NCBI GenBank assembly: GCA_002269645.1
Contig: NIVC01004109.1
Location: forward strand, 1 to 60,352
Direction of reading: 5' to 3'
DNA length: 60,352 bases
Source of the DNA: Macrostomum lignano
Taxonomy: Eukaryota
Within the stretch, counting starts at the first letter, position 1; each line of letters opens with the position of its first letter. The notes beneath the pieces were generated by a model. The model was not told the origin of the DNA. It worked only from the letters and a program-made list of their open reading frames with translations, and searched no databases. Made by a program: the position numbers and the translations under genes. Shown here in pieces: positions 16,171 through 22,100 of this stretch.

Positions 16171-19100
16171 TCAGCCTTTGAAGACGTCCGGCGCGGAGAA
16201 GAGAATGGCGCAGGTGGAAATGACGGTGAAGCAGGAGAAGATTATTAAGCAGAGTCTGTCCACCACCCTCGCGGCGAATTTCCACTCGCTGCTAATCTCG
16301 CCATCGGCCGTGTCGTCGGCGATCTTCTTGGTGATGACCTGGAGCTCGCGGACAACGGCGGCCAGCTCGTTGCGGGTGCTGCAGTTCGAGCCGCAGGAGG
16401 GACCACCGCCGCCGCCGCCGCCGCCGCCGCCGCCGCCGCCGCCGCGCTCCGCTCCGCCGTCCATGCTGCTGCCCATCACGTTCTGATAGGTGGGTGGCGA
16501 GAAGGCCCCTGCGCTAGCGCCGATGCCGCTGACCCCGACACCGCCCACGCCGCCCACTGTCCGGATGTCGTCCTCGAGGTCGAGCACATTGGCTAGCAGA
16601 GACTTGGACGAGCGCTCCTTCAGCTCCACGTTGGCGTTGGCGGCTTCGCGATACGAGGATGTCCGGAAGGAGGCGTTCTTTCTGCGGCGCAGGTAGATTG
16701 GCTCCTTCTCCTCGTCTCTGTGATGATTCCTCATGCACAGGATGTTTGCCAGGTAGGTGCAGATGAACTTTTTCACCTAAGAATAAGGAGGATTCGGCGG
16801 CGGAATCTTTGTGTTGTGTGTAACAAGAATGCTCAGCTGAATTAATAGTTACATGTGCACGTAAATGGTCAGTTACGCCATGTTTAACTTGAGGTTTAAC
16901 AAAAATTCTTAAGAAGCCTCACCCAGTTGGGCACAGGATGCGACTCAGCGTCTCTATGATGATAATTGAGCACAATGACGGTGAAGACCACGGACAAGCT
17001 GCACATTACCATGGTGCAGGAGAAGTACATGCCTAGAGTGGGCAGGTTGGGTTTAAAGACTTCCTTATCGTAGTCATTTTCCCATAGAAACAGGAAATTA
17101 TTCTTAATTACAATACTTAATTATTTTTAAAAAGTAGTGCAATAGTTAATCAAAACAAGCAGCGCCCTTCACCACAAAGTATAGGATTAGTAAAATCGCT
17201 CTCGCAAAGTCAGTCAATAGTATAATTTTACCGCTGAACAGAGTTGGGTAAATTTCGGTACAGGCTAACCTGTTGAAGATATACATGTAAGATAGCTAAA
17301 GATGATCCATCTATAAGACGTGCGTTTAATTTTTTTGCAAACTAGTAATATTTTACAAAAAAACTTTGCTAACTATCCCTAGCTATAATGTTTTCTCAAT
17401 GTGTACTTTAGTAAATCTGGCAATATCTTCACTGAATTAAAATACCAGACAAAGTCATCTTACCATGTAGAGCTCTACACAGATGGATTCGTGATACAGG
17501 AGTATAGAGTTCTGTTCTTCGTTAAATTCTTTCAATTATCTTAAATTGAGTATCAGGAATGTTATCGTCAAATTCCTCCCTGCCACACTCACTGTACACT
17601 GCTGTGTCATCAAATTCCTCCCTGCCCCACTCACTGTACACTGTGCTATCAAATTCCTCCCTGCCCCACTCACTGTACACTGTGCTATCAAATTCCTCTC
17701 TGCCCCACTCACTGTACACTGTGCTATCAAATTCCTCCCTGCCCCACTCACTGTACACTGTGCTATCAAATTCCTCCCTGCCCCACTCACTGTACACTGT
17801 GCTATCAAATTCCTCTCTGCCCCACTCACTGTACACTGTGCTATCAAATTCCTCTCTGCCCCACTCACTGTACACTGTGCTATCAAATTCCTCCCTGCCC
17901 CACTCACTGTACACTGTGCTATCAAATTCCTCCCTGCCCCACTCACTGTACACTGTGCTATCAAATTCCTCCCAAGGTTCGATTCACTGTACATCTGTTT
18001 CTTGGCTATTTTCAGAATTAGTATCTATACTTTTTTCAGCTACCACCATTTCGAGCGACCGATATCTACAGCCGCTACAGCGCATTATTTCGACACTTCT
18101 AAAGCTTAATTTCTCTCCAATTCACTGGGAACTACAACGTATGTGTAGAGTAGATTAGCCCAGCGGCGTAGCAACCTCACCTATCAACGGCACAGCGTCT
18201 GATGTTGGCGGCATGGACTCAGCGACCATCATAAGAAACACTGTTAGTGACAGCAGGATTGTGACCCCTGATAAATGCAAGGCGCAGGGCATTCAGGTTA
18301 GCTGGGTTAGCAATTGTTGTTGGATCTGTCCGTCAGAATGGATGATCATAGTGGCCTTGGTTTGAGCAGCCCCCTCTCCCTTCCCCAGGCCCTATTTCGA
18401 CTTGAGCAAGGCATCACGCGCTGTTAGAAAATATTTTCAGGAAAATGTAGGTAAAAAAAGAATGTCAAAAGATGCGTCGATAAATTTTCAGGCAAAAGCA
18501 TGCGCGCAGCAAATCCAAGGTGACTGAAACAGAGCAAGCAAGCGGTGTTGCTGAGTTCACGCAACACCAATGGTAAGCTAAGAAACGTAAAAAAATATTG
18601 TTATCAAGCAAATGCGTAAAGGAATATTGAAAAGGCGTTTGCATGATTAACAAAATCATGGCAATTGTTAGTTGTGCCGTAAAATCATCAGAGACAGCCC
18701 ACCACCCCATCATCGGTTTTAATAAAAAAACAGCAAACCAAACCGAACTCCTGTCGCCAAGCAAAGCACTCAGAGTTGCCAACGAAAGCCTCACCAATTA
18801 GCGGCACAGACTCTGACGTCTGCGGCATAGCGTCAGCCACTAGCAGTTGAAACATTGACAGTGACAGCATAATTGTCACTCCTGGGATGAGTTCGATTGC
18901 ACAGCATGATCGGGGGATTGCGGTTTGAGCAGAATGGTTGGTTCATTGAAATTGCGAACTCACCTCTTTTTTTACAGACTGTCTTGTTTAATCAGCATTT
19001 CGATTGCTAGTTTACTAAACTGTTCATTGTGGTATTTACACGGTTGGTTAGTCCAATTTGTCACCGCTAAAATACAGAAGCTCCTTCCGGTAAAACTGCT

Positions 19101-22100
19101 GCTTCTCCAATCGAATTTCAAAAGTCTTTCATTTTAGGCAGTTTAACCGTACTTTTTGTTGAACAGGTAGTTTACCCCATAGACTTCCGGTTGAACAGGT
19201 AGCTTACCCCATAGACTTCCGGTTGAACTGGTAGCTTACCCCATAGACTTCCGGTTGAACTGGTAGCTTACCCCATAGACTTCCGGTTGAACAGGTAGCT
19301 TATCCCATAGACTTCCGGTTGAACTGGTAGCTTACCCCATAGACTTCCGGTTGAACAGGTAGCTTACCCATACTAGAAGCAGTTTACCCACTTTTACCCA
19401 CTCTAGACACCCCAGCTCTGCTAAATCCAGCACAGGATTAAGACACGTACCAAGAGAGATTTTTTCACCGGCATCCGGCGGCAGAACAAAGGTGAGCAGC
19501 GACATTGATGAGATGAGCACGCAAGGAATAATGAGGTTAATGCCATAGTACAGAGTCCGCCTCCGTATCTGAATGAAGTAGCTCAGATCGATGAACGGAT
19601 ATGGGCAGCAGTCGTACTCAGCTGCCGTCCTCTTCCCGTCCATGCCTGCAGGTTGGGAAGTCGGGTTCGGGGGGCGGGTAGGGGCACCGGAACGGGAGCC
19701 GTGAGTTCTCGTATCGTTTTGTATCGCGCATTTCATCAGCATGCAATTAATTGCAGTTTATTTAATAATCTTATTCAACAGGTATTTCAAAGTAACTTCT
19801 AATTAGTCTGGGACGCAGCTCGCGACCTTAAAGTTTCGTTCTAATAAGATTTATTAACGTTAAATTTCTTATCTATAGCCTCGATGACGTAATATAGAAG
19901 TTACTAAAAATAGAAGTTGAAAATCGTACAGCGTCTATCTATTCAATAGTACCAGTACTATATTGGCAGATTGTATACTAAATAATTAATAGCCAAGTTG
20001 GAACGGAGACACAATTAACAGAGTAAAACTGCTAAAAAGATTTTTCTTTGGATAAGAAATCATGAAAGTGCAACTACTGTATGCAATGTATAGCTGGGAT
20101 GTACTTGCAGCTGCTAGATATTGATGGTACTTTGCGCATGCTGGCAGACTACACAGACACGTATTTATACACGATCAGGTTGAGGAAAATTCACTTGAAA
20201 GACACTACAACAAACTATTTAGACTGAGGAAAGTTGAAGTTCTCAGACTGACGCCACCCTGATCATCCATTCGCAATTCTTAGAAATTGAGGCCCTACCA
20301 AAGCTAACTTTCTCCCCAGCATCCGGCGGAATGATGAAGCTAAGCAGGGTCAAACAGGCCATGAAAATGCACGGCCCAATTAGATTGAATAAATAGTACA
20401 GCCTGCGCCTGCGGACTCGAATGCTGTACTGCAGGTCAATGAACGGGTGCGGGCAGCAGTCGTATGTGGCGCTGTTGCGAACTCCAGGCATGCCTGTGGA
20501 AAGTATTCGACACTTTGTTGTCTGCTTCTGCTGGCTGAGGCAGCTGCGCTTTTGATGCTGGCTTCTGACACAGCTGCTTCTGACACAGCTGCTTCTGACA
20601 CAGCTGCTTTTGACGCAGCTGCTTCTGACACAGCTGCTTCTGACACAGCTGCTTCTGACACAGCTGCTTCTGACACAGCTGCTTCTGACACAGGCTTTTG
20701 GGACAGGCTTCTGACACAGGCTTTTGGGACAGGCTTCTGACACAGGCATTTGGGATAGCTGCTTCTGACACAGGCTTTTGACATAGCTGCTTCTGACACA
20801 GGCATTTGGGATAGCTGCTTCTGACACAGGCTTTTGACATAGCTGCTTCTGACACAGGCTTTTGGAACAGCTGCTTCTGACACAGGCTTTTGACATAGCT
20901 GCTTCTGACACAGGCTTTTGACATAGCTGCTTCTGACACAGGCTTTTGACATAGCTGCTTCTGACACAGGCTTTTGGAACAGCTGCTTCTGACACAGGCT
21001 TTTGACATAGCTGCTTCTGACACAGCACAGGCTTTTGGGACAGGTTTCTGACAAAGGTTTTTGACCTAGAAACAGCCTCGATTTTCTTACTTGAGTAGAC
21101 CCCAGTGAGTAACTATGAGTAATAATAGTGGCAAAATCAAGTGCAATTTGCCAGAGGTTAATTAGTAACAGAGAAAAAACTGTGTAAAAAACGACAATTA
21201 TGTTAGAGAAAAGTACAGTACAAGCTTCAATTCGGGACTATGTGTCTGACGTTAATCATTTGCCAAATATACTCTTGTAGTACGAGCTTAAAAGTACAAA
21301 ATGCATGGTAACACCGTTTTTTATCATGGTGCACTTTAAGCGACGTTGTCAAACAACCGGTGAGAAGCATTACTGCCCATTCCGCCGACTCCCCTGAGCA
21401 GGCACACAAGCGCGCGGCAGTCATACTCCCGGGCACACACTCACACAGGAGTGCACAGCGGCCCTAACTTTATTTATCGTTAGGCTGTACACTTCACTGT
21501 GTCTTGGGGGTTGGCACTCAGGGGCGTTAATTACCCGAGAAGAGCCAAGCCGAGATTCCAATTTAGCCCAAAATTAATGTGACTGCACTTGGAATCGAGC
21601 CTGGGCCGCTGGCGCATCAGAGCGCCGCACCTGATCACTGGGCTGCGGCGTTTCAAGTTTCGTGTGTTTAGGCTATGAGATGACACTGTCAGCAATGTGA
21701 TTTTTTGAAAAGATTAGCCATGCATTATCGCTTGGTTGACTTGCCTTCCAGATACCACTCCCCGCTGGGCACATAGGTCTCCAGATCTGCTCCGCCAATC
21801 TCTGAGCAGTTATTGGGGTCGTTTAGTCGCATTTCGTTGGTGCTTAGCGACTCATTTGAGCACTTGAGCCTCAGGTCCAGGGTGCCGCCATCGTAGGACC
21901 ACGACCCGAATTTGAGCTTGCACACCTGGGTGTCGAATGGGAACCAGGTGGTGTCAATCTTGCAGGTGGATCTGAACATTCCTGGCGGGATGAAGTTCAT
22001 GTTGCCCGTGTGCTCGATCACCACGTTTGTCGGGTACGTGCCGTCAAACTTCTCGTCGGCGCTGCGTTCGGAACGAATGCGAGGTGTTGGATTGTGTTGG

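Follow-up and report, generated by a model that had tools for sequence, protein, structure and literature searches.

The stretch of DNA analyzed here, a 60,352-nucleotide (nt) contig of the flatworm Macrostomum lignano (NIVC01004109.1 of assembly GCA_002269645.1; hereafter the window), harbors on its minus strand, between positions 38115 and 16171 as delimited by homologue-guided mapping and junction reading, a gene predicted to encode an alpha7-like nicotinic acetylcholine receptor (nAChR) alpha subunit. Three exon positions of this gene occur as tandem pairs, 3a/3b, 7a/7b, and 8a/8b, each of which would stem from a duplication event of its own, and we consider it likely that the copies serve as functional alternative exons. 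One copy per position would be spliced into each messenger RNA in a mutually exclusive manner, such that a single gene could give rise to subunits differing in the tip of loop C, the first transmembrane segment (M1), the pore lining, and the linker between the second and third transmembrane segments (M2 and M3). The combination 7b+8a would then be the form captured by the models of this gene, with 7a and 8b as the alternatives. A preliminary description of the locus had likewise assumed tandem duplicates most likely used as alternatives, which is also what the gene models considered here suggest. It had derived 2 × 2 = four variants from two pairs; the two pairs stand, but the count does not, as the third pair, 3a/3b, absent from that description and located at the position of exon 3a/3b of insect alpha6, raises the ceiling to 8 isoforms.

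The exon anatomy (Table 1) confirmed to the base what had been described for the two downstream pairs, namely 7a/7b (195 nt each) followed by 8a/8b (87 nt each), all open, in phase 1-1, and with normal splice sites; of the limits assigned to this arrangement, 21745 is the base at which the upstream exon ends and 18181 the final base of 8b. Translation of the minus strand over 18150-22080 yielded five open segments bearing nAChR hallmarks. With phase 1 at both ends, the reading frame stays open across each of the four exons, and joining 3a or 3b, 7a or 7b, and 8a or 8b resulted in an uninterrupted frame of 544 amino acids (aa) to the stop at 16171 in 8 of 8 combinations. Within the window, each duplicated exon is present in two copies only. 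AG acceptors and GT donors flank every exon, with the acceptors of 7a, 7b, 8a, and 8b lying behind pyrimidine-rich tracts; the exception is the exon 5 donor, which is of the GC type (AAG/GCAAGT, window positions 21743-21744). A GC donor is also found at the same intron of an M. lignano paralogue (locus L001), and GT at that of the annelids Capitella and Owenia and the nemertean Lineus.

Judged by its sequence, the gene is a member of the alpha7-like group of nAChR alpha subunits, which comprises ACR-16 and insect alpha5-7. The 563-aa product of the 3b-7b-8a combination matches the Pfam families PF02931 (Neur_chan_LBD, 201 bits) and PF02932 (Neur_chan_memb, 172 bits) and is 97% identical to the M. 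lignano proteins P0125 and P0129, and its matches outside M. lignano are nearly all named alpha7, alpha6, or ACR-16-like. Of the solved structures, both the a-a and the b-b segments match that of human alpha7 best, by a margin of more than 25 bits. Vicinal cysteines of the type YxCC in loop C are a mark of alpha subunits; here, both 7a and 7b code for the vicinal cysteines (YDCC), which together with the C-x13-C Cys-loop found within exon 5 identifies the product as an alpha subunit. In the prime numbering customary for the family, Glu is found at M2 position -1' (within GEK) in 7a and 7b and Leu at 9' in 8a and 8b. Acetylcholine-gated cation conductance is predicted from these sequence marks.

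According to an alignment with human alpha7, exon 7 codes for the tip of loop C, strand beta10, the pre-M1 arginines, the whole of M1, the M1-M2 loop, and M2 positions -1' to 3', and exon 8 for M2 positions 4' to 20' and the beginning of the M2-M3 linker. Within M2, 8a and 8b differ at 8' (M/L), 12' (S/T), 13' (M/V), 15' (Q/L), 16' and 17' (L/M), and 20' (D/E), the outer ring being formed by Asp in 8a and by Glu in 8b; the linker differs as well. The distinction drawn earlier between a choice of agonist site and M1 on the one hand and a choice of pore on the other is too clean, since exon 7 also carries M2 -1' to 3': with M2 divided at 3'/4' between the two exons, the pore is shared by both clusters, and positions 1' and 3' are fixed by the choice of exon 7. 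The a exons had further been taken as alpha9-like and the b exons as alpha7-like, which our comparisons do not support. Segments 7a+8a (107 bits) and 7b+8b (128 bits) both match human alpha7 best, the next family following at about 79-88 bits; alpha9 or alpha10 chains were not among the PDB matches for these segments, hence the comparison with alpha9 is not a direct one. The corollary that one locus supplies two channel types plus chimeras is not supported either, given that the a-type exon 7 is placed by the tree described below as an exon lineage inside alpha7-like genes and that the gene models hold "chimera" combinations only.

The members of the exon 7 and exon 8 pairs are true homologues under constraint. 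Exons 7a and 7b are 62% identical at the nucleotide and 59% at the amino acid level, with a saturated synonymous divergence (dS) of 2.3, a nonsynonymous divergence (dN) of 0.36, and a dN/dS of about 0.16; for 8a and 8b, the identities amount to 72% and 61%, dS to 0.77, dN to 0.23, and dN/dS to about 0.3. Insect alpha7 proteins used as tblastn queries match both 7a and 7b (E 1e-19 to 1e-25). Two further M. lignano contigs (L005 and L006, 97-98.6% identical to the window) carry the four exons in identical order, and over these three assembled copies of the locus the exons show 1 substitution in 564 nt versus about 1.1% in the surrounding introns, an underpowered comparison (1 substitution where about 6 are expected) that gives a weak but consistent sign of constraint. 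The residues typical of the a and b copies are retained in at least three M. lignano paralogues. Exons 7a and 8b would be intact and constrained alternatives. That each exon was duplicated separately, as proposed at the outset, is borne out by the presence of the exon 7 pair where exon 8 is single (annelids, nemertean) and by the difference in dS between the two pairs.

The preliminary description knew of no pair of exons coding for loop C and M1, nor of two adjacent pairs; both arrangements occur in other genes. The loop C/M1 pair is widespread in protostome alpha7-like genes and is modelled as alternative isoforms in the nemertean Lineus longissimus, and an array of 7, 7' and then 2-4 copies of exon 8 is found in models from cockroach, termite, locust, stick insect, and barnacle. 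Gene predictions in which exon 7 copies are run together were first noted for a louse, a cockroach, and eukaryotic contigs; others come from two annelids and, among arthropods, from termites, locusts, stick insects, bugs, a barnacle, an amphipod, and decapods. At the DNA level, the exon 7 copies of Capitella teleta, Owenia fusiformis, and L. longissimus (Table 1) have AG/GT sites and a common phase. In a neighbor-joining tree of 37 exon 7 peptides of 65 aa, which is only moderately supported, the four M. lignano a-type copies group together (86% bootstrap), join the first copy of Lineus (63%), and form a wider a group with the first copy of Capitella and that of one eukaryotic contig (44%); the b-type copies constitute a separate spiralian group, and arthropod 7 and 7' cluster within arthropods. 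A 12-residue string is identical between the 7a exons of M. lignano and Lineus. Because a-type copies group across phyla and have signature residues in common, the split between 7a and 7b would be older than the divergence of flatworms, annelids, and nemerteans. A search with the 7a-8b segment returned one full-looking protein, P0252, that carries an a-type exon 7 alone. In the published literature, of which our coverage was incomplete, we found no description of a loop C/M1 exon pair, including those of Lineus, Capitella, and Owenia. The cluster is nevertheless visible in public annotations of many protostomes, and its kind, duplicated alternative exons, is already known and involves no new principle.

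Alternative use of the copies in this gene is what we infer from gene models. Models P0125 and P0129 contain one copy each of exons 7 and 8, in both cases 7b+8a; P0129 also includes 3b, and P0125 starts after exon 3. P0126 is likewise listed among the 7b+8a models, and the same combination occurs in parasitic flatworms and at paralogue locus L001, which holds just the 7b-type and 8a-type exons. Models P0133 and P0388, representing two copies of another paralogue, combine a 7a-type with an 8b-type exon, and no a-a or b-b combinations were present among the M. lignano gene models. In Lineus, the five RefSeq isoforms XP_064652926/936/944/952/968 all have 480 aa, X1, X2, and X4 carrying 7b and X3 and X6 carrying 7a, and the choices at exons 7 and 3 combine freely. 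Equal length of isoforms with either 7a or 7b is, at the level of models, the signature of mutually exclusive use; equal-length isoforms of insect alpha6 and alpha7 alternate copies of exons 3 and 8 in a like manner.

Several points weigh against alternative use. The RefSeq isoforms are models, no model of the M. lignano gene carries 7a or 8b, and the loss of both exons from paralogue L001 and from the locus of the liver fluke Opisthorchis viverrini (L007) indicates that they are dispensable in some lineages. Moreover, P0123, P0124, and P0127, as well as many insect RefSeq "X1" models, string all copies together. Such all-copy models contain odd junctions and intron read-through and would duplicate M1 or M2; we read them as prediction artefacts, although some transcripts may include both copies. 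A Dalpha6 "variant type V" protein (P0226) indeed has exons 8a and 8b in tandem as two 29-aa units, and in Bombyx alpha6 exons 3a and 3b can both be included (PMC2045683). The lengths of 195 and 87 nt are multiples of 3, so that frameshifts and nonsense-mediated decay cannot police co-inclusion, as had been pointed out; the conclusion drawn from this, that an active mechanism is implied, does not strictly follow in view of these insect complementary DNAs with both copies.

Two other explanations for the extra copies have to be weighed. M. lignano assemblies hold several near-identical copies of the locus (L005, L006), and the Opisthorchis locus shows two exon 7 copies with 100% identity, so that an assembly or haplotype duplication comes to mind for the window as well. 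The divergence of the copies (only 62% and 72% nucleotide identity), the same exon order on three independent contigs, and the orthologues in other phyla exclude this for practical purposes. Alternatively, 7a and 8b could be unused relics that are slowly decaying beside a constitutive 7b+8a form, as might be surmised from the use of 7b+8a by every model of this gene and from the paralogue and parasitic flatworms that lack 7a and 8b. It would then be difficult to understand why the two exons have kept open frames, the right phase, and good splice sites despite a saturated synonymous divergence between 7a and 7b and an age of at least the flatworm-annelid-nemertean split. A dN/dS well under 1, the type-specific 12-residue string common to M. 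lignano and Lineus 7a, the 90% identity of 8b to M2 of annelids and insects, the paralogue models built on 7a+8b (P0133, P0388), and the use of 7a by Lineus isoforms likewise argue against decay, which we regard as very unlikely. Functional alternative exons thus remain our preferred reading.

How one copy might be chosen over the other is a related issue. Steric hindrance is unlikely here, as the introns between the copies measure 653 nt (7a-7b) and 527 nt (8a-8b); in Owenia, with copies about 69 nt apart, steric exclusion may be plausible. In the 5.1-kb region from exon 5 to exon 9, searches for RNA pairing found no docking site with several selectors and established no exclusion mechanism, a further point against mutually exclusive use. 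A scan of duplex energies between all pairs of 40-nt segments gave a minimum of -39.8 kcal/mol relative to -36.4 to -40.9 kcal/mol for shuffled sequences, i.e., no excess; the top pairs of the energy scans (-44 to -37 kcal/mol), among them one between intron 5 and the 7b acceptor, were matched by block-shuffled sequence. A 39-nt repeat in the intron between 8b and 9 that is complementary to the 8a acceptor was also rejected, its score being inside the shuffle range. The top ungapped complementarity of the region connects arm A, downstream of the 7a donor, with arm B, upstream of the 8b acceptor (Table 1), over 31 nt with 81% pairing and a perfect core of 13 base pairs; the core duplex amounts to -37 kcal/mol. 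Nowhere else in the 60-kb window does the arm motif occur, and the paralogue devoid of 7a and 8b lacks it. Its score was reached by 3 of 100 dinucleotide shuffles, a weak result, arm A pairs almost equally well with a site in exon 5 (-34 kcal/mol), and both arms are identical in L005, L006, and the window and thus uninformative as to covariation.

This candidate duplex invites a different reading of the locus, in which the two choices are coupled and nested rather than independent. Only two forms would be made, the inner exons 7b+8a by default and the outer exons 7a+8b when the intronic duplex loops out 7b+8a as a unit. The position of the arms, the restriction of the motif to these sites, and its absence from the paralogue without 7a and 8b would fit such an arrangement, as would the M. 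lignano models, which show only 7b+8a (P0125, P0129, P0126) and 7a+8b (P0133, P0388). However, the meaningful position of the arms was noticed after the fact, and the shuffle result, the thermodynamic scan that was no better than shuffled sequence, the identity of the arms in three near-identical copies, and the competing site in exon 5 all speak against attaching weight to the duplex. Five gene models are too few to argue against a-a and b-b forms, those with 7a+8b come from another paralogue, and the exon 3 and exon 7 choices of Lineus combine freely. On balance, we hold a coupled choice to be unlikely. Its more far-reaching version, a nested switch with exactly two receptors (7a-8b and 7b-8a) that survives from an ancestral protostome gene of the alpha7-like group with alternatives at exons 3, 7, and perhaps 8, has in our estimation a still somewhat smaller chance of being correct; if it were, M1 and M2, the two halves of the transmembrane core, would have co-evolved as cross-matched partners.

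Returning to independently duplicated alternative exons, the exon 8 pair looks younger, or more patchy in its distribution, than the exon 7 pair. Exon 8b shows 90% identity with the only M2 exon that Capitella, Owenia, and Lineus possess, as it does with exon 8a of Dalpha6. Exon 8a is of a VAD..PQTSE type that is common to M. lignano paralogues, trematodes, a cestode, and a monogenean. The duplication of exon 8 probably dates to the flatworm stem lineage, with 8b representing the ancestral and 8a the derived type. One exon 8 copy of an arthropod alpha7 (LSLSVFSLMIADALPQTSEAIPLLG) resembles the flatworm 8a, and 30 residues are too few to tell ancestry from convergence. The Opisthorchis locus has exon 7 of the b type only and exon 8 of the a type only. 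Its exon 7 is found twice (44619-44804 and 45653-45838), the two copies lying about 1 kb apart and encoding 100% identical peptides, and a fragment of the exon before it is duplicated as well; rather than an alternative pair, this probably reflects a duplication in the assembly. The simplest history would be a duplication of exon 7 in an early spiralian or protostome, followed by that of exon 8 in the flatworm stem and then by the loss of 7a and 8b in the sampled parasites and one Macrostomum paralogue. At exon 3, annelid, nemertean, flatworm, and insects all have pairs. In addition, the equal-length Lineus isoforms X1 and X4 differ at residues 88-118, a block that matches exon 4; the Lineus gene seems to have a further alternative pair at this position, where the window has a single exon.

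Among known systems, insect alpha6 comes closest. Its alternative M2 exons, already referred to in the preliminary description, are indeed established (PMC2064938, PMC6393475), alternatives being documented for exons 3a/3b and 8a/8b/8c (PMC2064938, PMC1919356, PMC6393475), and in Tribolium alpha6 all six combinations of exons 3 and 8 were detected (PMC2064938). The flatworm gene has in common with it the subunit group, the 45-nt exon 3 pair, the 87-nt M2 exons with identical boundaries, and tandem exon duplication as such. Unlike insect alpha6, for which the isoforms compared contain only one exon 7, it has a loop C/M1 pair immediately preceding the M2 pair, and its 8a, in contrast to the insect 8b and 8c, is of a type common to parasitic flatworms. 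The annelid and nemertean loci lack the exon 8 pair, and with 30 aa the exon is too short for a tree relating the flatworm and insect copies. The exon 7 pairs of Lineus, Capitella, and Owenia correspond to that of M. lignano in the exon concerned, its length (195-198 nt), phase, and a-then-b order, and the signatures RRRK/R LY... and GEKVSFG versus GEKISLG; they differ in that these genes have one exon 8 and hence no adjacent cluster, whereas the flatworm has an exon 8 pair and spaces 7a and 7b by 653 nt. Adjacent clusters of the type 7, 7', 8... are also a feature of arthropod alpha7-like genes (Periplaneta, Cryptotermes, Zootermopsis, Schistocerca, Timema, Nilaparvata, Rhodnius, Amphibalanus, decapods). 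There, in contrast to M. lignano, the canonical exon 7 comes first, and in the retrieved proteins 7' appears only together with 7. Because of this reversed order and the clustering within arthropods, the arthropod 7/7' duplication may be independent of the spiralian 7a/7b one.

Other Cys-loop receptor genes with alternative exons are documented in the insect literature (alpha4 exon 4, alpha6 exons 3 and 8, RDL exons 3 and 6, and GluCl exon 3), and the "exon 7" pair of Bombyx alpha8 codes for M2-M3. The gamma-aminobutyric acid receptor RDL, in which exons 3a/3b and 6a/6b yield 2 × 2 isoforms and one pair touches loops F and C (PMC2064938, PMC12309072), resembles the gene analyzed here in having two independent alternative exon pairs; unlike the latter, it forms an anion channel and belongs to a different subfamily, and its clusters are not adjacent, neither of them coding for M1 or M2. 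With regard to exon choice, competing RNA structures made up of docking site and selector sequences have been described for Dscam1 exon 6, 14-3-3 zeta, and human ATE1 exons 7a/7b (PMC7797038). In-frame duplicated exons, normal-sized introns between them, and candidate intronic complementarity are found here as well, but the one candidate duplex would link two clusters to each other rather than select within one of them, with weak statistics and no comparative support.

Table 1. Exons of the alpha7-like gene, candidate duplex arms, and repeat arrays in the window, and exon copies at three loci of other animals.
Feature	Position	Strand	Remarks
Exon 1	38061-38115	minus	ATG and signal peptide, phase-1 end, donor gtgagc; found by tblastn with the N-terminus of model P0129
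Exon 2	27984-28150	minus	N-terminal extracellular domain
Exon 3a	25588-25632	minus	45 nt, phase 0-0, first copy of the third duplicated pair
Exon 3b	24186-24230	minus	45 nt, phase 0-0; copy present in models P0129 and P0126
Exon 4	23013-23122	minus	
Exon 5 ("exon 6" of the preliminary description)	21745-22061	minus	Cys-loop and loop F region; ends GEWYLE G
Exon 7a	20299-20493	minus	195 nt, phase 1-1, divergent a type, GEKVSF, donor gtaggg
Exon 7b	19451-19645	minus	195 nt, phase 1-1, canonical b type, GEKISL, donor gtacgt; in P0125, P0129
Exon 8a	18795-18881	minus	87 nt, phase 1-1, flatworm-type M2, donor gtgagg; in P0125, P0129
Exon 8b	18181-18267	minus	87 nt, phase 1-1, canonical M2, donor gtgagg
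Exon 9	16923-17032	minus	M3
Exon 10	16171-16776	minus	M3-M4 loop with poly-Gly, M4, stop
Arm A, candidate duplex	20242-20272	minus	27-57 nt downstream of the 7a donor
Arm B, candidate duplex	18336-18366	minus	69-99 nt upstream of the 8b acceptor
Minisatellite arrays	17568-17973, 19158-19369, 20561-21025, 22084-22919, 23504-23991, 24434-25371, 25715-26178, 26776-27948, 29664-37903		
Capitella teleta (L002)			7a then 7b, 147 nt apart; two exon 3 copies (4311, 4614); one exon 8 copy
Owenia fusiformis (L003)	50808-51272		7a then 7b, about 69 nt apart; one exon 3 copy; one exon 8 copy
Lineus longissimus (L004)			7a then 7b, 786 nt apart; two exon 3 copies (62458, 62606); one exon 8 copy

Some observations concern the gene's repeats and surroundings. 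Nearly every intron, all but the 146-nt one between exons 9 and 10, contains at least one minisatellite array (periods of 4-39 nt, up to 215 copies); one array ends 23 nt upstream of the exon 5 acceptor, and array lengths vary among the three assembled copies of the locus. The coding sequence contains a length-variable GGC repeat of its own, as the poly-Gly run in the M3-M4 loop (exon 10, 16350-16400) comprises 14 Gly in the window and 11 in P0123 and P0125, which derive from other copies. A GC-rich, transfer RNA-like stretch at about 21540-21650 was dismissed, since ARAGORN called no transfer RNA there. Downstream of the receptor gene, domains 1-6 of Rpb2, the second-largest subunit of RNA polymerase II, are found in pieces of open reading frame (826-4342, minus strand), a neighbor that is annotated on L005 too. 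Upstream, an uninterrupted open reading frame of 1435 aa (43036-47343, plus strand) with RVT_1 and RNase H domains marks an apparently intact retroelement, and a second, RVT_3-like fragment is located at 12831-13553.

Duplicated alternative exons are the main invertebrate route to Cys-loop receptor diversity from few genes, and the exon 3 and exon 8 alternatives of insect alpha6 matter for spinosad resistance. Against this background, the points of interest in the M. lignano gene are that the loop C/M1 cluster is old, that it lies right next to the M2 cluster, and that the few models at hand pair the copies crosswise. With two clusters side by side in a small gene, and in a model flatworm amenable to transgenesis, the locus would also be convenient for distinguishing independent from coupled exon choice. 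A cluster that covers loop C, M1, and the cytoplasmic part of M2 appears to have been kept since before the flatworm-annelid-nemertean divergence and is present in arthropod alpha7-like genes too. Given this age, the alpha7-like subunit would long have been a multi-isoform gene, and isoform identity would accordingly need to be controlled in cloning, expression, and drug targeting; the orthologues of parasitic flatworms, for their part, appear fixed on one form, 7b+8a.

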